The notes below the pieces were generated by a model that ran no database searches, was not told the DNA's origin, and saw only the letters and a program-made list of their open reading frames with translations. From Tubulanus polymorphus (taxonomy: Eukaryota > Animalia > Nemertea), in contig NC_134030.1 in NCBI RefSeq assembly GCF_964204645.1, forward strand, positions 5,870,778-5,934,777: 64,000 nucleotides of DNA. Reading direction: 5' to 3'. A program made the translations under genes and the position numbers. Shown piece by piece: positions 37,379-52,118 of the stretch. Each line of letters begins with the position of its first letter. Positions within the stretch are counted from its first letter, which is position 1.

Positions 37379-40300
37379 CTACGTTGTTGAATCAATGCCT
37401 GCGCTTAAATATCCTAAATTTAGCATCCCTCGGTCGTCCATAGCTGGCGGTTGTTCAACTTGCGTCAAGTCGACAGTGTCTTCCGTTCTGCTATAGAGGG
37501 CGTTGTTGAACCCCACCGCGTCCGGGCCGGCAATTTGTCGGCGCCGTAAGAAGATGACAATACCGACAATAACCGCTACTAGCATTATCATACCAACACA
37601 AATTCCGACGATCATTCCGGTTTCTTTCCTCACGTCTGTAGTAAAGAGAAATAATGTCAAGGGTGTAAACGAGTACATATCATACTAAACAGACCCTTCG
37701 ACAAAGAACAAATTTGATTTTCTATACCTTGTGTTTGGCCACCGGCAACTGGTCCGTTAGTGGGCCCAACAGTGGCTCGTTTGGTGGTAGTTTTGATAGG
37801 TTTTGGCGTTGTAGCTTTCGTAACGGGGGTTGGCAGAGAAGTAACTGAAATGATACGCGTTTAGTACATTTAAAAAAAAAAGAATAGTACAAGCATACGC
37901 ACGATAATGGAACAAAATATAAATGTTTAACCACGCACGTTGGATTGCCGGCTTTTGACATATGTAAAGTCGATAGGTTGTACACGATTCAGGGTACCAT
38001 TGACCACTGCTCTGAGCCATAGATCCACATGCCTTGCTCGAACTCTGTGATTTATTGGGCTCGCCACTAGCCCAGTTTTTATAGTCGATTTTCGTATCAT
38101 CCAGCCATGTCCAAGGCCCTATTAAAAATAATAGTGATGCCGTATAGTAAACGATGTGATAAAGCATTTCAAAACTGATCACTCGTTTCCTTAGTGGTTT
38201 ACTAACTCAAAAGCTGCACCATACATACGTACCGTCTTTCTCTTTGGCCAAGCCGATCCAATAATTGTAGGACCGTTTGACTGATTTGAAAACATTCACG
38301 AAGAAATTCGTCACTTCCTGTGAATGAATGGATGCTAGTTCGGCTCCGTGATTCATTTGACACAGAAAACTAGCATACGCTATCGCCTTAGTACTCGAGT
38401 TGGAAAAATAATAACACATGTTGTTATGGTAAATCCAGGGATATTTACAGCGATCCGGGTGTACAGGTGCAACTGACGGTTTAGTGGCTGAAAATTATGA
38501 AACAGAACTTTGTGATGATGAAAAATCTACATGGTTATGAACGCACAAATCAGACTGAAAGTAAACTCTACCGAATTCATAATGACAATACGTTGATCAA
38601 CGAAGCTTTTCTTACCTTCGGTCGTTTTACAAACGAATGGAAATTTCTGATTACAATCCGTTTTGTTCCATTTGCCGTTGGCCATCATTGACACGCACTT
38701 CCAGTCCGTCCTCGAAGACGGTTCGTTCGTACCCCAGTTCTTGTAGATGAACGGCCATCCGTCTATCCACCCAAGCCTATCGAGACCCTGAACGACCAAT
38801 AAACATCGGTTAGTTGTTAGTCAACATTCGATGTAACGAAGCAGGTGAAATATACATGTAAATATTACCATCCTAGCGTTCAATCCGATCCAGAAGCTCG
38901 TGACGTTCATTATTTCTGATATATAATGAACGTAGGTTTGTTCGAATTGATCAGTGATCGAAACTAACTCCGCCTTCGGGGCTTCTTTATCCGAGCAATG
39001 ACGATTGGCTTGTTCCCAGTTCATCTTTTGGACGATTACCTTGTAGCAACTTTGACGATAGCGGCTGTACCCGTTTTTACACGTCGATGATGTCGGTTTA
39101 GGTGTCGGTAAGCTGGGGTCTGTAATTGGAATTCATGCAATAGATTCTAGGTGAAGAAGGCCCAGATAGAGTCCAGTAATGGTGGACTCAAGTAACACGA
39201 GATCCTTGGCATTTGCCTAAGAAGAAAGGAGATTTCTATGCGTAAAAATACCATACCCTTTAGACCGGAGCATACAAATCCATTTAAATCGGTACAGGTT
39301 TTCAATCGCCAAAGCCCGGCACCCACGGGGGATGAAACCATCTCAGCACATGCATACTGAAATGTTAGTACGAGTGCAATGTATGAACAAGCCCAACGTT
39401 TCCGAAATATGGACACAAGAACTATGATTCTTACGGTATCATATTTGATTCCGCTTCTGGTTGGCTGCGATTTTTGCCAGTACGTGACCCTCGTTCGTTT
39501 ATAGTTGATCCAGCTGTACGTGTACTTTTTTCGATTGTCCGACATTCCGATCCAAGCGTTCGCTGTCAAGTTAACCAGTAAGGTCGTCACCAAAGCTGCG
39601 AAAACCAAAATTAACATTGTATGATACTTTTAGAAATCAAACTAATGTAGAATACTAAAGACAGTGTTGCTCTGATTTCTGAATGAAGTTAAACGCAACT
39701 ACGGCTGTTGGTGTTACGGCTATTTATTAATATCCATTATTCACGAAATGAATTACATTAGAAAACTAAGTGATGATTAACGAGATAATGTAGTTCAAGT
39801 TGATGGACACTTACATTGTTCATAATCGGATTCTATGACCATTAGATCGTATTTTGTGCCGAAGGTCCCGCATTTTTTTCTCGCATTTGCCCAAGTTTTC
39901 AGCTCAGATAAAACCTTGATACATTTATTACCTGCAATCAAAAATACCGTTCTCACATCATTTGATAACAACCCGGCAGGAAGCACCTACTCTTTTTACG
40001 TAACGAAGTTTATTCATTTACCTATGGGTACAAAGTCGGTTGGACAGTTCCCGACAATTGGTGGTTCAGTCGGTGGTAGGATGGTGGCGAAGCTGTCGTT
40101 GGTTTTTTTACAAATGAAATTTCCAGTGTACGTACAAGATGCAGTACTCCAAACACCTGCGAATTTGAAAAAGTAACAAAAATCTTATCAACCAGATGAA
40201 AGATAAGAACTAGAATCCATTTGAGATTAGAGAACGATAATCTATCTCTAGGCCTTTTTGAACACTTAAAGTACGGATCCACCCTCCGCAATTCCTCCGA

Positions 40301-43300
40301 AAGTTCTCAAATAATTCTGTTGTTATTTCCATCTTTGATCTAATGATTTAGATTTCTTAATTTAATGATGCAAAAATATAGTGATCTTTGTTTCTCCATT
40401 CGTTTCAATTCTATTCATCACATTTTCACTCCTTTTTCTATTTTTCCGCAGTCCAGCCAAGATTTCATGTGGAAAATAGTCGGCTTGTGATTGAATCTCA
40501 TAAAGATAAATGGTATGTTCAAGTTTAATCCACGTATATAAAACATATGATATAATACAATATATGTTATCTATTCCTGTGACTCTATTGTAAATTTTGT
40601 TTACGAAATAAATATATATATATATATTACAAGTATAAGAAATTTCCATTTCAAAACTCCTGATATGGGAAAAATCTTTTTTTTCTCTATCTTGTTTATT
40701 TTCTCTTCGCCCTCCCATGTTTCTATAAAAATCCCAGGCCTTATGAGACTCGAGTGTATGGACCAGAATAGGCAAACGGTTACCTAACGTTTTGCTCATG
40801 CGGACGCATTGGCTGCTTGACGTAGAACTGGGTTGTCGTCTGTCCCAATTAGTATAAAGTAACGGCAGTTTATCACTCCATCTGAAACGGAAACAGCTCA
40901 GTTACAGCATATCTAAATTTCATTTTCTCTGACATCTCTGAAATCATATTTGTCCATAAGATAAAACATACCTTCCCGGTCCATCCCTGTACGAGAGTCC
41001 AACCCAATATTTACTGCTTCCGCTGGTTAATTTGCCAATCTACAAAGTAACGGTTGATTTAAGATTAGAAGTTCAAAAAGAAACATAATCCGGAGTAGTT
41101 TCGCCGAATACAGACCATGCCCAAAACAAAGTTCAATTCAGTCTGTGAATCGATGCTGGTTAGATGACCGCCATAACCATTACATAAATCTTCAGCCTTA
41201 GTCCAGGTGGTACGCCGGCTACTTCCATACGACGTCGTCGCATAATAGCACATACCATCGAAATGAATCCATTTTACGGATGCGTCCTTGCTGTGGCAAG
41301 TAGGAGCTATAAATTTACGAAACATATTTGTATATCTGTTTGGAAATTAGCAATTAGTTTTGTCGATACTTTGATCATCATTGATCATAAAAAAGGAAAT
41401 GTATGTGATTGATTCCTCAAAATGATAAAACCTACACGTGTCACCCGTTGGCGGTACTTGTGTAACTGGCGGCTTGGTTCCTATAAAAAAAGACAGATAG
41501 CCGTCGAGATATTAATTGCAATATAGGCCTAATGACTTTGTATTTAACGACTGTGTATGATGTATTTACCAGGAGCGACACCACAGATGTAATAGCGAGA
41601 TGTGTGACAGTTGATATCATTCCATTTCATACTGTTTCCGTACATTTCTAAGCATTCTTCTTGATTGTTAAAACTGTTTGGTTCACCGCTTTGCCAGTTC
41701 GTATAATCCCAACTCGAACCATCGCTCCACTGCCACGCTAAAAATTGATTCTAATATACTGCAGAAACTTGCTGTAAATTGATATATGCTGTATGTAAAG
41801 TATTGGGTCGTCTTGAATATCTGATTGATCAAAGAAGACTGACGACTTTCCCCCGAAATCCTGTTCAGCTGCATAAAAACTTGCTATAACCGAAGCAGAA
41901 GTTATCTTTTACTTACTATTATTGAATTGGGGATCTTTGGAGTTTCCTCCAATCCAATAGTTACTGCCCCTGAAAATAAGTTATTAGTTATTAGAACCCA
42001 TTGTACCATTTGCTCTATGGGTACTGTTTAGTGCATTTAATTGTTAGCGTTATGGTTTGTACTCTCAGCCTAATCTATGGAAAAGCACTACACTTAACGT
42101 ATTCATGAGTCACATTAAATTCCATTAAATTAAATCACATGCGATTAATGATTATGATGATACATAAACACTACATACTACTCTAGCAGGCTTTTATTCT
42201 GTTGGAAATTTGTAATTGTGCCTTAATAATTCAAAATCATTCAATCAAGATACATCAAAATATCAAAAACCGTTATATACAAAGTAGAATTCAAATTCGA
42301 CATTCGACCATCTCAACGTTCAGCCCACCTGCAAATAGCTTAATTTTTTAAAATCAAAGCAGCTTCATAACTTACCAACGTAGGCCCAATGTAGAACGAG
42401 AAGGTATCTTTTTATGAAATGATGCCAGGTCCCCGCCGTATTTATTTTTGCATATTAATCGAGCTTCGTCATATGTGTAAATGGTGTTTCGTCGCCGAAA
42501 TGCCTGTAGGGGGAGTAGCGTTAGTGTATTGAAGAAAAGCGAAAGCAATAGATACAAAGTCAATTCAAAATCCACTGAACTAACACCAGGCTCCGATTCC
42601 ACAGACCAGACTGCTTCCACAATAGGCTTTGAGTAATTTGTAAGATTGTTTCGTTTTATGGTCATACTAGTTTAGTGCGGACTATTCTAAAAGCCTTGAC
42701 TGTGGAATCGCGGATATGATGGATCCTGTACGACATGATCATGAGATTTACTAATGATATATAATCAACAGTTTGGGTTAATCGAAGAAGAATCAACGCG
42801 ATTGGTTAATAAAACTGAGAGACAAATAAGCGCAGATACAGCTAAAGTTCTACCATCACCGCTGAGACTGAAGCTAAACTATAGCGCCACCTACAGTGCG
42901 AACTGATACTCACGAACTATTTGGAACAAGGTCTCGAAAAAATGTCGTAAACTGCGCATTACCGTGGAGACTGATCAGATGTCCCCCGTAGTTTGAGAAG
43001 CAAAAATTCTCTGCGTCATCCCAATTTTGCAGATCGGTAGTGAACGCCTTTGGAAACGATATTCAAACGTTGATTACGAAGGCAATTTTTATGAACGGAT
43101 ATAGAAATTATGTTGGAGCCGACCACATGTTTCGAGACAGCTCATCTCAGATATATTTCTATCCAGAAAAAATCGCGAAAAAATAACTACACACCTTATA
43201 ACACATGCCGTCGAAATATTTCCATGCTCTTGGGCAGTTTTCTCTGGGGTGTGTTGTAGGTGCTGGCGTAGTGTAATCAGAATCCGGCGCTTCGCAAATG

Positions 43301-46300
43301 AACGGCGCCGTTTTGGTACACATCCTGTCAGCCCACAGGTTCTGTTTTATCGGTTCCGACTGAATGACGGCGCACATCGGCTTATTCGACCCTATATCAA
43401 ATACACAGACATTCATCAGTTACGACGTATATATTGTTACCGTATTCCAAGGCTTCCTGCTACATTGATATATATATATACGTACCATCATGAGAGACGT
43501 CCCAATAGGTATGCGTTGCACGACTACCATCAGTCCACTTGTATGTATTCGACGTCCAGGAAGTGTATTTTCGGTCGTTCGTGAAACCGATCCAGTACGA
43601 AATAACATCGTCTCTGATCAATGATCCGACGAACGTATTCTCCATGCTTGCAAATAGAAAATATAGTATACTTCACAACAACTTCGCAGTGGAATTACTA
43701 AGAACAAGGACATCAATACGATTGCATTCCTCATGACGGAAAACCTATTGAATTTTTGATTTCACCGTTTCTTACCGATCTTTGATTTTTACAAGATGAC
43801 CTCCGTTTTTACGACAGTAACCCTCTGCATCGTTGAAAGTGAATTTGTCCGAATTCACACCATAGCACGATTTGCCCCATTTGTGCCTGTATAACTAGAA
43901 CATAAATAAGTATATACGTGTATATGGTATTTATATTTACAAAATGGCAATAAATCTTGGAAATAAAAGGACTTTTTCATTGTTTCTACTTGCATCCAAT
44001 GTTTATGGCTTGATACGAGTATGAACTGATCAACGATATTCTGGCAATTGTCACTTGAAAAAACAATATACGTTTTTCGGTTCAATCAATTACAACTAAA
44101 GTTTCATATGAACTGACCATAGCTGGGCATCCTGTTAATGTCGAAGGTGTTGTTTGAATAGATACCAATTGCAATCCTGTCTGGCAAATGTATCCGACAT
44201 TGGCTGAACTAGAGCTACAATCCCTCACCGAGAAATCACTGTACTAGAATACAAACGGGAAATACGGAAGAATCTCGTCTGATCTAACTATAATTTGAAA
44301 GCATCATTTATAATTTTGCTTACTTTCTTCATTACGACACAATTAGGTTCGTCCAAAATGAATTGCGGCTCGTTTGTCATCCACTCGGTGTAGCTTATAT
44401 CGGAGCCATCCACCCATTGGAAATATTGAGGATCATCCTTAGCGTTAAGTCCGATCCAATATTGAGATCCTTCAGAAATATTTGATATGCTTGTTTCAAA
44501 TACAGAGGTAATAACGGCTTCTAGGTATTCACTAATTCATGGCATAAATTCAATGTACCTGAACTCATGATGAGGTCTTGAATAAACGTTTTTTTGAACC
44601 GATCTTCTATCGTTAGTAGATTACCACCAGATTTCACACATTCAGCCTGTGCCGATTCCCACGTTAATGCTTTGCTGTTGATCTGGATACACTGGTTTTT
44701 CGAGTATCTGCTCCAGGCTTTCGGACAACCGAGCATATTACCTGAATAAACAAAAATAAACCAAAATTGGGATAAAATTGAATACACGAGATTCAGGTGT
44801 ATTGATATTGAAACTAACCCGTCGAGGTGGTGGGAAGTGTGGGTGGTGGAACAGTCGTTTTCGGGACACTTGATGATTTCTTGCATACATATCCTAATTG
44901 ACTTTCACAATCGAAGATTTTCCACTTAGAAGAAGACGGAGATATGGCTCCGCAACTGTAACCACTTGATTTAATCGAAGGCTGTCCTGAAAAATTCGTC
45001 ACAAGGTTATTAGAAATTTTTAGTTGTCTGTCCAGAATTTCGTGACATTGTTTTGTAACAAACTATTTCTCACCGGTTTCATAATTAAAGTAAGCCATCG
45101 GCGACGAGTTTACCCAAGAGAATTTAAGAAATTGCTTTGAGAACGCCATGTTGTACAGCGCTGTCCACAGCCAAAGATTCGGCAGTCCCCGCATGCGCCC
45201 TAAAATTACGAAAACGTAATAATTGCTGGGATAACTTTCTTAACAAATCTACATTCTAAACAATCAGTAAAATCGGCACAAAATGTTACCAGCGATATAG
45301 ATTTGTTCACTGGGATCCAAAATGGTCAGCAAATCACCACCGGCATTTAAACAATTGCGACGAGCATCGTTCCATTTGGCAGACTGTTGTATGTTGAACT
45401 GGTAGCAATATTGCTCGTGGTGTGGGGCTGTCTCCCAGCCACTGCCGCATTCTTTAGACGCTACAAAAGATCATTTTACCTGCTGCATTTTACGATTCCT
45501 CTCGTATATCAGCATACAAACTTAAAAGACATCGTGTCGTCTGTTTGCTCATATATTGCGGATCTAGACTTTTCCGTAATGTTTTAACGATATATACGTT
45601 TTTTATCCGTCAAGGTATACAATTCATGTCATATTGGAAATATAGTGATAGCGAGGTACCTGTAGTCGTAATAACTGGTGTTGGCAATACGGCAATCCTC
45701 ACTGAAACAACAATATGTTATTAACATCGATATTGTTATCAACGGTTGATCAGTTCCAACAACAACCAAAAGAAGTGATCTTTCTAGAATTAGTGCTAAG
45801 AGTTTTCACTTCACTTACCAGCCGGTTTTTCACAGATGAAACCGACTTTCTCAGTACAATTCAAGTGATTCCAACGACCAATTTTACTACCGGGCCCGAA
45901 TACATCAACGCAGTTCTCATCATCGGGCACATTTTGTTCATTGTCGTCCCAGTTTGTATAGACCGCCTGAAAAGTGTTTTCAGTGCAGTGATGATGTAAA
46001 ATTACATGTAAAATTCATTGCCATTTTTATTTTCAGAAAAAATCAGGGAAGAAACAAGGTTTCTCTTGTCCCACTGGATAATTGTGACGCTTATATCATA
46101 TAAGTTAGGGTAGTTTTGAAGGGAATGAATTCATCATTTGAAGATATGATTGTAATTCCTACACCATTTCGGAATCAAAGAATTAGATCTACTGTTAACG
46201 TAAAAGCATAATGGATTACCGCTTGTTCTTCGTAATTCCAAGTCCATATCTGATTTCCTTGATCATCTTCTATCCTATGCAAACCGATCCACATAGGAGA

Positions 46301-49300
46301 TGGAATCTTGGCTGAAAAAAATTACCATGTTAAGTTTAAGAGCTCCATTTCGAAGCCATCAGCGCACGTCAGAAAATACACTACTCCCTTCAAAATTCAA
46401 CGTGCAGGGCGCCTAACAAAAATGTTAGAGAAGATATTATTAACCATTACGTTCGTAAGATATTTTCCACTTTTTTTAGATTCAAAGAGAGTTCGAAAGG
46501 CTTTTCACGGGAACAGGAAAATAAATGCATGTTTAATTGGCACTGTGATGACACGATCGCCGGCAAACTCCACCAGATTTATTTGGATCTATTTCGGTTA
46601 CCTGCAATGAAAGTCATCGTATCTTCGTTTCGAATAGTCGCCAGTCTGGATCCGCGCTTCTGACAAAAACGCTGCGCTTGTGATTGCGTTACTGATGTCG
46701 TGTTGAATAGAAAACAGGCGGCATGGTCCGGGAAAACTTCCCAGCCAGAATCGCACGAATATTCGACTGCAAGAACATTTATGCAAGACAAATATGAAAC
46801 CCTAATGAGCGGCTTGCATGATAAAGTTGTGTTAAAACTTGCTCGTAACGGCTCCGAAAGATAGTCACTTACGTGGTGGTGTGGGTTTATACACAGGAGA
46901 TTTGTAAGATGGAATCTGACAGACGAACGGTTGACTGACGTAACAGTCCGGTCTCAGTGACCAGCCACCATTATCTGCAGAAAAATGTAAAGGGGAAAAG
47001 AGGAATGGCGGATATTCTGAACATGGCTAGAACTAAATCAACGCAAAATCATTGAAAATTCACATCGACATGCTATATGTTACATACCGATATCCATTTG
47101 ACCACAAAGGTCATTAGATACATAAGCCGGTTGTCCATCTAACCAAAACGTTGCTGCAAGGGGACTACCGTCAACCCATTGAGCCTTACCATTTACATTT
47201 GCTAAACAAGGAGGAGGTTTTTTAGCATGCATTAAGATACATACATATATACATTCATACATATATACATCAAAAAGAAGGCTATAACTTGGTATAAGTG
47301 ATTTCAGGTAATGAAATGACAATCAGATAGGGGTGACATGCAGACTTGCACGATATCGGTACACACTTGATCTCAAGTGAGAGATTGATTACATGTATAA
47401 AGCAGTCAAGGATGTGTCGCTGAGATAAGAATGCCGCGATCATTGCAAATCACTTTCAATTCTCCGATGTCATAATGTTGGGTCACAAAGGAAATTGGAT
47501 AACATGCATAGCACATTCACAGTCGGTTTTGCATGCAAATGCAAGATCACATAAAGATTTTATTTACGCTGAATAGACATTTGGCCACAGCCGATTGTAT
47601 TTTTGTTTATGCTCATAAGCCAATTGGTGTAGGTAATGTTCGTTCCCTGAACCCATGTTAGCTCGCTGTCTGGTTCATCCTCTGGTGTATGAGAAAGAGA
47701 TATCATCAACTCGATTTGTAACATTTGTAACACTTATTTTGGTCAAGATTCCTCTCAAAAATGACGTTTGGAACTGGTCAACAGGGCTCTATGTATGGAT
47801 TTGTATGGTTAAGTTACCTCGAGGCCGTTAAAATGGTATACTTACTATGTATGCCCAGCCAGATATCAGTATACCTCACACTGTCCCCAATACGGTTTAG
47901 TATGTTGTTAATTATGAACTTCTGTTGGTCATTGCTGGAAATACAAATAATCATGAGACAATTGCGTCCGCGATCGTTGTTAGAATTAGAAATGATACTT
48001 ACGATTTGATAATCAGATGGTCAGCGTTGCGGTCCTTGCAAAATGTATGCGCGTCCGACCAGGAGGCAAGTTCGCCTGTTGTAGCGTGCAGCATGTAGCA
48101 CTGGTCTTTATAGGTTTGCCAGCCATCATCACAAGCCCCTGAAACAATAAAACATAGAATTGGTTAGTATTTAAGAACCGATTCGCCATATAGTAACAAA
48201 ATATATTTCGATTATTATCTCAATATTATTTTGAAATGTATTAAAACATAGATGAATCTTGGTTGGTTTTAAGATTTGGAAGGCTATTTCTTAAAAGGTT
48301 ATCCACTAGTATTTATCTGATATATGTGAAACAGGTAAATAGATAATGAAAGAAATTCAAATGGCATTTCCCCTACCTAAACTCTTCTGGCAGATGAATC
48401 TATTGAATGCCGAGCACTCTGATGTAACCCACGTCTTGTTTTCATTGCTAGCGTCACTTGTCAGATATACGCAATTCTTCGTTTTATCGGTTCTGAAAAA
48501 TCATATATATATACAACAGTGCTAAATGACAGAATTCATGGGACCTATTCAGTATGATCCTCATTTACGCAGTCAGTGTCTAAACCGTATCTATAATACG
48601 TCCATGATCTATCTAAGCACATACCCTGGCTGACCATCTATCCAGTAGACGTTAGTATTATCCAATGACTCTCCTGACACCCAGACCTGTTGTAACCAAT
48701 ATGCGTATAAAGTAGCACATGATAGCTGCATAATGGAGGGTATCCGAAATATGGCAGAATGTGGAAAAACTTTCGCAATAAGCGTTGTATCATTTAGGGT
48801 GGTTGGTCGTCTTTACCTTTGAAGTACTTGTATAATTCAAACCAATCCAAACGTTGGAATTGCTTCCATAAACAATATCGTGAACGGCCGTTTCGTCATT
48901 GTAGTTTAATATTGACACCAGGTTTGCGTTTTCCGTTTGACATTGAGCCCTGGAAAAATAGGGATTATTTCTAATTCAATTTCTGCGGTTCAAGTTCCAG
49001 TACCAAAATCATGTATGTTATTTACATTTTCAAAACATAAGAAATTGTTTCGTTATTGCTGAAAAACAGATTTTCAATCCGTGCTTAAGTTGTTATCATA
49101 CACGGTGTTTTAGCATTACGTAACTACTTTAATTTCTGTGTTAAGATATGGCCAGTTTCGTTAATTTTTTGGCACTCTGATCTGCCGAGTGATTTGGTTT
49201 TGAGAGTCGAACTCATTCATCACTTACTTTGCCGAATCCCAAGTACCCTTTGATTCCATTGAATATTTGTAGCAGCGATCGTCGTAAATCTGCCAACCGT

Positions 49301-52118
49301 TCGCAAAGTCGCAGTGTTTTGGGGCATCTGCAAACGAACGAAGCGTACACTGAATATACAGTTCAATGTGAAAACAGTGCAATCAATTTCAGAAAAGACG
49401 TACGTACTTTTCTTCCGCTTGCAGATGTAAGAGAAACCATTGTCACAATTGTTATCGTTCAGTTTCCCGTTTTGATCGATTTCTCCGCAATACTCGTTGT
49501 TGTTGTGATTATTGGGTTCATTCACTTGCCACATCCTGCGAAGGCATCATCAATTCAAACAATTAATCAACGATTACAATGCTCAGTTGATAGAACACGT
49601 TTTCAACCTTGGCCTTCAAGTTTTAACTTTTGGAAGGCATTAATCGATTATCATCCGAAGCATATATGCTCTGGAGATAAAAGAAAATAAGATAAGGTCT
49701 GATCATTCAGTATTCATATTATGTTATATGTAGCCATTTAGGGGATTTACCCATTTGGGTCTTTGCCGTTCTGTCCTATAATGCTCATATCAGTGGAGCC
49801 GGTTGACCAGACGAATGTTTGGCTTTTACTAGGATCATGCAGTCCCGTCCACCATCCTGCCACGTTATATTTTGTGTAATAGTTTTGTATCTGCTGCGGC
49901 AACCAATTCTAAAAAATAAGGTGTGCAAGTGATTTGGAAAACGACATTATTTCAAAGTTTATAACCCATCAAACAGCATTGTCGCACTGAACTGAAATAA
50001 TATATACTTATACAACTGACGCGTGAAAATGTTTATAGATGGCGATTGATTGAATAACAGACCTTTTCAGTTGGATCTGTTATATACAAGAGATCAGCGT
50101 CTTGTTTCATACATCGTTGGCGAGCAGATTCCCAAGTGGCTACCTTCCTCCTAAACAAGTAGCAGTTGTCGCTGTTATCCAACCAACCTCGAGGGCAATC
50201 GGACGCACCCGTTATTCCTAAATATAAGAAAATATGTACATTAACTCCTATTTGTGATTTCGAATATTAGATTGAATGTAAGAATGGTCATTGTCCTTCT
50301 AACGACCATAGTTTAAATGACATGATAACGGAATTAAATGTTGCATTCCGTTTCCGCGAAATTCTTTTTAAGTTTAACAGTTGCGAATAGTGTGGCCTCA
50401 TAAGATAATGTTAAGTATATCCGTTCGTCCTCAGTGGATTTTCCGTTCGTACTGTGTATGTACATGGTGATTTTATCAACGTCGTATCAGTCAAGTAGAA
50501 AGGGGCCTGGACGTGTTGAAGCTTCGGTTCATATATGCAAGCTATACGGATTTTTTGCGTAGATAAGTATCGTTACAGTACTGAATGATATGTTACTTTT
50601 TTCTTCTGCCTCAATTCACCAAGCAGGCCAGAATACCTCTATGTTCATGAAGTGAAGGACTAGTGTACAACAAGCGTGTTGGCCTCGCCCGTGACTATGG
50701 AACTGGATTAAAATAGTTTGCTTCAAAGGTTGAGAGCTAGCGAGCTTGGGCTCCAGTGCCTATCCCTCCTAGAGCGCGAGGCTCGTCGCTCATCTGTCGA
50801 TTCTCGCGAGCGACTAGTGGCACGATTTCAATTACGCACACGTCGTCGTCACTCATAAACGAAACCGGGACGCGATGAACAGAAATTTAAAAAAAACACC
50901 ACTGGAATGAACTAGAGAAAGATTACCGGAAATTATCTAAGCCTGTAAGAATTCCTATGCGTCATATATATGTCGCTTATAAACAGACAGAAAATATAAA
51001 CAGGTCACACTGATCATTTTACTGAACACACATCATCTTTCCTAGATCCGGTATAACATATTACTGGAAAGCCAAAATAAATGACTATTCGCGCTTTTCA
51101 CAAAGAAGTAAATGGTCGTAGAGCGTCGTATAGGTCACTGTCAAATTACAAACACTTCCAGGAATTGATGAAGCCTTTCTTATTAATTACTTTTAAATCA
51201 GCGTCTTACGTCCGTTGTAACGCCATCCTATTAATGTCGCTGCTCTCAATTTATACCAAAATGAATTCATTTTACAAAAAAAAAACAAGAAAATTAACAA
51301 AATAAACAAACGACACAAAGCGTCATGTAGACATTACCATTATCATAATTACCACTGCTCTCAATAACGCCAGCATTTTTTTTTTCAAAAAAAAAATTTT
51401 GCCCAATCTAACTCAAATTCGATGAAAATATCATTCTTTGTAATGCAAAAATTCTTCATAACGCTTTATATTTTTCATCATCAGTGAAATTTATAAACGA
51501 CTTGTTTTTCTGTAGTTACGTATGTCGTTTTTACAAATTGTATAGTTGCCTGATTTCGAAATTGTTACGTAAAAACGATCTATTCTAATTTGACGACCAG
51601 AGAATTAATGTACGGATACAGTATTACTCTGTGGTGCCTATTTTCATTTTTATTTGTGCTAGTTCATTTTTCACATCGGTGTTTCATTAACCTTCTACAT
51701 ATATCTATATATCTATATAGTCTGATCTGTTCCCGATATTGCGTAGAATTAGGCGACTTGGTTTTGCGGTGCTGTCGCTGTAGTGTAGCTGTCCCGCGCC
51801 AGAAATAAAATATTTCAACACCACAATAATGTATATGAAAAAGAATTCGAAACATACGTATCTATCTGTATAAGCTATGACAGTGACATTTTCGTAGTGA
51901 ATTGAAGCATCACAAAATAACAAATGGCTATTCTAATTTGAGCCGTGTCCAATTTTAACGAGACCCGCTGCCAATGATAATAATCCATTAAGTCGGCCTG
52001 TATTTTATGCATCTAATTATAATCCAATTCAGGTAATTTTAATGCAATAATTTGTTGACACACACTTACCAATCACGGAGCATATTGTTATCGCGTACAA
52101 AAATAACAAAAACATCAT
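37379..52118 (-). CDS. Macrophage mannose receptor-like type I membrane protein with 12 tandem C-type lectin domains (no ricin/FNII domain seen)
   Basis: Signal exon 52118-52070 (MMFLLFLYAITICSVIG), then ~40 small exons from 50217 down. These give 12 units of C..GW...CY / W..A...C...L..I / WIGL / W..W / C...W....C....FIC with P/T-rich linkers. Thr/Pro stalk exon ~37844-37728. Last exon 37636-37379 has a TM (MIVGICVGMIMLVAVIVGIVIFL-RRR) and FNNALY, like the MRC1 FENTLY endocytosis motif. Confidence 0.92.
42376..42503 (-). CDS. Lectin CTLD8 alternative exon B (128 nt, phase 0-2)
   Basis: actaac branch point, cccctacag|...|gtaagt; encodes AFRRRNTIYTYDEARLICKNKYGGDLASFHKKIPSRSTLGLR(W). Confidence 0.82.
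42914..43047 (-). CDS. Lectin CTLD8 alternative exon A (134 nt, phase 0-2)
   Basis: tttccaaag|...|gtgagt; encodes AFTTDLQNWDDAENFCFSNYGGHLISLHGNAQFTTFFRDLVPNS(S). Confidence 0.82.
47088..47201 (-). CDS. Lectin CTLD3 alternative exon B (114 nt, phase 1-1)
   Basis: ttgtttag|...|gtatgt; encodes TNVNGKAQWVDGSPLAATFWLDGQPAYVSNDLCGQMDI. Confidence 0.82.
47568..47681 (-). CDS. Lectin CTLD3 alternative exon A (114 nt, phase 1-1)
   Basis: caccag|...|gtaaat; encodes KDEPDSELTWVQGTNITYTNWLMSINKNTIGCGQMSIQ. Confidence 0.8.

Follow-up and report, generated by a model that had tools for sequence, protein, structure and literature searches.

Homologous twin exons predicted to be used either/or in the third lectin-like domain of a ribbon-worm receptor

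In the stretch of 64,000 nucleotides of Tubulanus polymorphus DNA analysed here (the window), the gene named 'macrophage mannose receptor 1-like' carries two adjacent, homologous exons, A and B, that encode the same segment of its third C-type lectin-like domain (CTLD3). The anatomy of this pair is that of a mutually exclusive exon pair. We lean, with modest confidence, towards reading A and B as an old tandem duplicate pair that is used either/or, and judging from the sequence, CTLD3 can probably be produced in two versions.

Results

The receptor gene and its product

The gene has 42 coding exons on the minus strand (Table 1). The spliced exons of the window translate back to the RefSeq protein XP_074652342.1 ('macrophage mannose receptor 1-like isoform X2', Tubulanus polymorphus; hereafter P0001), and all introns are of the GT-AG type. 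The only other member of the 90% cluster of this protein is isoform X1 (XP_074652341.1). The sole difference between X1 and X2 is a 9-nt tandem acceptor at exon 17 (window 45460-45451), which adds the residues ASK to the linker before CTLD5. A close orthologue was not found, and the best homologues, about 25-34% identical, come from other phyla.

The product consists of a signal peptide, twelve CTLDs and a transmembrane helix, followed by a cytoplasmic tail in which the motif FNNALY (FxNxxY) occurs. The first CTLD begins at residue 23, directly after the signal peptide; the helix (around residues 1815-1838) and the tail motif were both identified by reading the sequence. Pfam recognized twelve Lectin_C stretches in the RefSeq product, which is the number of domains given in the initial annotation, and no match to a ricin B-type cysteine-rich domain (PF00652) or a fibronectin type II domain (PF00040). 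The best matches among solved structures belonged to the vertebrate mannose receptor family. Its tandem CTLDs, single transmembrane helix and short tail bearing a tyrosine motif recall the mannose receptor family, to which it nevertheless does not belong, since both the ricin-type and the fibronectin II domain are missing. Judged by its predicted domain composition, the protein is therefore a multi-CTLD receptor of the endocytic type.

Table 1 Positions of the receptor gene, the CTLD3 and CTLD8 twin exons and the intronic motifs in the window
Feature	Position	Strand	Description
Coding span of 'macrophage mannose receptor 1-like'	37379..52118	-	P0001 mapping, 100% identity, GT-AG junctions
Constant exon 10	47846..47934	-	89 nt, phase 2 to 1; CTLD3 alpha2 to beta2, C-terminal end WLGIH; donor GTAAGT
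Exon A (unannotated twin)	47568..47681	-	114 nt, phase 1-1; encodes (K)DEPDSELTWVQGTNITYTNWLMSINKNTIGCGQMSIQ
A-B intron	47202..47567	-	366 nt; four sense-strand UGCAUG
UGCAUG motifs in the A-B intron	47537-47532, 47508-47503, 47342-47337, 47231-47226	- (sense)	From motif count
Exon B (RefSeq exon 11)	47088..47201	-	114 nt, phase 1-1; encodes (T)NVNGKAQWVDGSPLAATFWLDGQPAYVSNDLCGQMDI
Constant exon 12	46873..46974	-	102 nt, phase 1-1; NGGWSLRPDCYVSQPFVCQ...; CTLD3 beta4 and beta5, WSLRPDC, FVCQ, linker
CTLD8 exon 8a	43047-42914	-	134 nt; in RefSeq
CTLD8 exon 8b	42503-42376	-	128 nt; unannotated, open

Anatomy of the twin exons in CTLD3

Exon A sits inside the 644-nt intron that RefSeq places between exon 10 and exon 11 (exon B). 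The initial annotation had described two phase 1-1 exons of equal length here; sequence reading and a script located both on the minus strand where it had put them, and its translations proved exact, including the split codons, which give K/T at the 5' end and H/D at the 3' end. The acceptor of exon A, ...ctcatacaccag, ends in cag after a pyrimidine run and is paired with the donor GTAAAT; exon B has the acceptor ...ccttgtttag, which ends in tag, and the donor GTATGT. When scored with position weights and compared with the 41 introns of the gene, exon A reached 6.6 for the donor and 6.0 for the acceptor (gene means 6.9 and 6.5), and exon B reached 8.5 and 4.65, the acceptor of A thus scoring higher than that of B. 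The predicted splice sites of A are mid-range for this gene and should be usable. A and B are adjacent internal exons with the same length and phase, homologous sequences and splice sites of their own, the sequence features looked for in tandem exclusive exons.

The amino acid sequences encoded by A and B are 31% identical, with W, V, G, T, W, L, CGQM and I in common. This shared W/G/W/CGQM.I pattern and a significant match of A to the corresponding CTLD segment (see below) corroborate the proposal that both exons encode the same structural element. Exon A has kept the canonical YTNW motif, whereas B has lost it. The loop encoded by A is shorter by two residues, and it is shorter than every other CTLD loop of the gene.

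In an AlphaFold model of CTLD3 in its B form (pLDDT 89.4), exon 11 covers the last part of beta2, beta2', the complete long loop and beta3, so that the twin segment indeed includes the CTLD long loop, as had been suggested. The same model supports the earlier argument that one domain needs one copy. In a doubled form, a compact, disulfide-locked fold would have to take up a further beta3 strand and a cysteine without a partner, and a form with no copy would, according to the model, lose a core strand and half a disulfide. Because a single CTLD accommodates one copy only, either/or use is the best reading of the pair. In the transcript, exon 10 would then be followed by either A or B, and this in turn by exon 12; the two resulting receptors would differ only in a 38-residue part of CTLD3 that comprises beta2', the entire long loop and beta3.

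The structural cost also bears on the proposal that both exons are normally included in tandem, resulting in a CTLD3 with a 38-residue insertion. Such a transcript would stay in frame, the sum of 114 and 114 nt being a multiple of three, and the splice sites of A match those of constitutive exons in quality. However, RefSeq joins exon 10 directly to B, and with the disturbed fold in addition we give tandem inclusion little credence. The warning in the initial annotation that a gene predictor could wrongly concatenate A and B did not come true in RefSeq. As the RefSeq models show that a form with both exons is not the main one, A, if it is used, must replace B.

Calcium and sugar site of CTLD3

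The residues reported earlier for the loop were all found: exon A contains an NIT sequon and no E/Q-P-x motif, and exon B has QPA at the EPN position. What did not hold was their interpretation as a switch in EPN/QPD specificity. The ligands of calcium site 2 (E/Q-P-N/D, the downstream E, and WND) are not assembled in CTLD3, where constant exon 12 carries WSL(RP)D at the position expected for WND and exon B has, besides QPA, DLC for E.C. Since exon 12 offers WSL to either twin, B brings QPA and DLC, and A brings no motif, a canonical site for calcium and sugar is lacking in both the A form and the B form as far as the motifs tell. The contrast is internal to the gene, because CTLD8 of the same protein has the complete set of EPN, EEC and WND. 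Most likely, the swap would alter a ligand surface that is not canonical, or a contact between domains, together with one N-glycan site (NIT), and not the choice between mannose and galactose.

Exon A as genuine coding sequence

We built a profile from the corresponding segment of the gene's other CTLDs, with A itself excluded. Among the 1897 unannotated open pieces of the window, exon A was the sole significant match (E 1e-3). With CTLD3 left out of the profile as well, exon A was still found with E 2.8e-3, the next-best piece having E >2, and it scored more than 9 bits above every other unannotated piece. This result is hard to reconcile with exon A being an open frame that arose by chance and whose lectin-like residues and bordering AG and GT dinucleotides are accidental. 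Consistent with a chance frame, neither A nor B alone gave a Pfam match, and tblastn with the whole protein found A only with E 0.7; the missing Pfam matches are explained by the exons being too short. Besides the profile match, exon A lies in exactly the required intron and has the required frame, phase and length. A chance frame is already very unlikely, and we give it hardly any weight.

When the annotated exons were masked and the introns of the gene were searched by tblastn with the whole protein, only two lectin-like pieces appeared, exon A and exon 8b of CTLD8 (see below), and no decayed exon copies were detected. Elsewhere in the 268-Mb genome, neither exon A nor exon B has close relatives or paralogues. 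At the nucleotide level, A and B are 46% identical with pS of 0.71, which means saturation, and pN of 0.50, and five of the eight conserved residues that have degenerate codons are encoded by different codons in the two exons. With synonymous sites saturated, no close copy in the genome and differing codons, the A-B split is ancient by these sequence measures. The overall distance between A and B is about that between any two CTLDs of the gene, A being no closer to B than to the others; the CGQM.I beta3 strand, in turn, is common to A and B only.

The open frame and the core residues W/G/YTNW/W/C/M are kept in A. Since saturated synonymous sites and the lack of a close genome copy indicate that A has long been separate, and since it is nevertheless open, in phase, correctly bounded and compatible with the fold, its coding sequence has very probably been under selection. 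A loss of use would be expected to leave traces in it unless it was recent.

Exon A in gene models and protein collections

Both RefSeq isoforms (XP_074652341.1 and XP_074652342.1) proceed from exon 10 to B and from B to exon 12, and A is present in neither. RefSeq variants of the kind seen at the 9-nt acceptor are normally created only with RNA evidence. As the pipeline resolved such a variant in this gene and yet included A in neither isoform, this suggests that the annotators had RNA in which A was scarce or missing. A profile of A and B was run against 1.84 billion representative proteins: exon B was found in P0001 only (a single near-exact match), and exon A gave no match in this set. In the protein collections, none of the transcript-derived fragments of 100-317 amino acids matched CTLD3 of P0001. 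Under either/or use, B would be the default form, and A would be a minor or cell-type-restricted one.

These observations can also be explained if exon A, formerly an alternative exon or a duplicate in temporary use, is an unused relic that is now always skipped, with its function lost too recently for decay, so that only the B form is made. Its absence from both RefSeq isoforms, the lack of an A-containing protein fragment in the collections searched, the missing E/Q-P-x motif and the loop shorter than in the gene's other CTLDs all fit a relic. Yet synonymous saturation and the lack of a close genome copy point to a long separation during which A stayed open; the core residues of the fold are kept, average splice sites stand in the right phase, the gene contains no decayed copies elsewhere, and the UGCAUG cluster between the twins described below would be unexpected for a dead exon. 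We therefore regard the relic as a serious possibility, though not a probable one, and continue with either/or use of A and B as the preferred reading.

Regulation of exon choice

Since both exons are 114 nt long, the reading frame does not enforce exclusivity, and splicing regulators would have to choose between them; a script showed that the frame is kept with A, with B, with both or with neither. A frame lock is ruled out by these lengths, a steric block by the A-B intron, which is too long at 366 nt, and a lock by U12-type splice sites by the donors, both being GT-A and of the U2 type. An inverted-repeat search for competing RNA pairings gave only short repeats at chance level. One perfect 10-nt inverted repeat was observed between the B donor (GAUAUCGGUA; window 47085-47094) and a site in the A-B intron (47352-47361); about 0.6 perfect repeats of this length are expected by chance in the 1.1-kb stretch.

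UGCAUG is the binding site of RBFOX. Of the four sense-strand copies in the A-B intron (Table 1), two are 31-65 nt downstream of the A donor, one is mid-intron, and one is 25-30 nt upstream of the B acceptor, adjoining a likely branch site (cuaaa). The whole 64 kb has 19 sense-strand copies. Four copies within any 366 nt occurred in one of 300 simulated windows, and simulations with the composition of the A-B intron itself gave four copies in 10 of 5000 cases. The cluster is real and rare by chance.

In C. elegans, RBFOX selects either/or exons through UGCAUG (PMC3585155). The ribbon-worm intron between the twins likewise carries (U)GCAUG at positions suited to enhancer and repressor elements. 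In an RBFOX-type switch, the motifs just downstream of A would enhance its inclusion, and the motif beside the likely branch point of B would repress B. Going by motif counts, the layout would fit a switch that turns A on and B off. A search for the Fox-1_C domain was silent in the T. polymorphus genome and equally silent in control genomes.

A second pair of twin exons in CTLD8

Another pair of twins, 8a and 8b, was observed in CTLD8 of the same gene (Table 1), the only domain of the gene with the full set of EPN, EEC and WND. Both exons encode the alpha1 segment (W/Y..A...C...YGG.L.S.H). As both lengths leave a remainder of 2 on division by 3, inclusion of both or of neither shifts the frame. 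The acceptor of 8a is the weakest in the gene (0.7 bits), and the donor of 8b is strong (10.0).

Discussion

If exon A is used, one gene gives rise to two endocytic lectin-type receptors that differ in the surface of one domain, and the public annotation, which does not contain A, would stand corrected. It would then be a compact case of splicing that generates recognition diversity in an animal lacking adaptive immunity. The value of the finding is tempered by CTLD3 not being a canonical sugar site and by the use of A being a prediction, and either/or exon pairs as such are already well known. The most far-reaching version, which we hold only tentatively and think rather doubtful as a whole, is that A is live and RBFOX-switched and provides a nerve or muscle receptor with a different, glycosylated CTLD3 surface, and that the swapping of loop exons in single CTLDs is a recurrent, independently evolved and undescribed way of diversifying recognition from one gene in multi-CTLD receptors of invertebrates (ribbon worm, oyster and sea urchins).

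The published criteria by which mutually exclusive exons are predicted are length, frame, splice sites and homology (PMC3228551), and the ribbon-worm pair agrees with the sequence features they require. In FGFR2 (IIIb/IIIc) and C. elegans unc-32 (7a/7b), the alternatives are likewise adjacent homologous exons of equal length and phase with intact splice sites that encode one structural segment. RBFOX-controlled pairs (PMC3585155) carry UGCAUG in the intron between the twins, as does the ribbon-worm A-B intron. The ribbon-worm twins differ from most described exclusive pairs in being far more diverged (31% identity), and their exclusivity is secured by no frame, steric or U2/U12 lock. Either/or use is here a prediction based on sequence.

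In overall architecture, the receptor is comparable to MRC1, MRC2/Endo180, PLA2R1, LY75/DEC-205 and FcRY, which are likewise type I membrane proteins with many CTLDs in a row, the majority of which do not bind sugar, and a short FxNxxY tail. The tail motif of MRC1 is FENTLY, compared with FNNALY in the ribbon-worm receptor. The ribbon-worm receptor has 12 CTLDs and neither a ricin-type nor a fibronectin II domain, whereas vertebrate mannose receptors have 8-10 CTLDs. We know of no vertebrate mannose receptor gene in which exons within a CTLD are exchanged either/or.

Among the RefSeq isoform clusters of related genes, pairs of equal-length isoforms that differ only in one block within one CTLD were found in Lytechinus pictus, L. 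variegatus, S. purpuratus and Crassostrea virginica; a second batch of ten isoform clusters contained no further equal-length pairs. In L. pictus, tandem 126-nt twins (L004, 7124-7249 and 7474-7599) encode the block from EPN to the end of CTLD1, and the isoforms X1 and X2 take one each. In L. variegatus and S. purpuratus, too, both twins are conserved. In C. virginica, twin exons (L005, 30429-30536 and 31203-31304) encode the beta3-WND-beta5 block of a C-terminal CTLD, and two isoforms of equal length (1923 amino acids) take one twin each. A related pattern was seen in amphioxus, where two isoforms of the multi-CTLD protein of Branchiostoma floridae LOC118411324 (P0262 and P0264, 2541 amino acids) differ only at residues 437-490; the same block pattern is present in the annotation of a B. 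floridae x B. japonicum hybrid. Judging from the Pfam list of the protein and the block sequence, the variable block of amphioxus probably lies within a discoidin (F5/8 C) domain.

The urchin and oyster proteins, also named 'macrophage mannose receptor 1-like', are like the ribbon-worm receptor multi-CTLD membrane receptors in which in-frame twins replace part of the binding region of one CTLD. Since the same design occurs in annotated isoforms of sea urchins and oyster, CTLD exon swapping may be general to the multi-CTLD receptor class. Our literature search turned up no paper that describes this design. In contrast to the ribbon-worm exon A, which is unannotated, the urchin and oyster twins are annotated as isoforms. 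The two members of such a pair are about 50-80% identical and keep EPN and WND, unlike A and B, and they affect other domains and have other exon boundaries (EPN to the end or beta3 to the end) than the ribbon-worm pair. Evidently, the ribbon-worm pair and the urchin and oyster pairs had independent origins.
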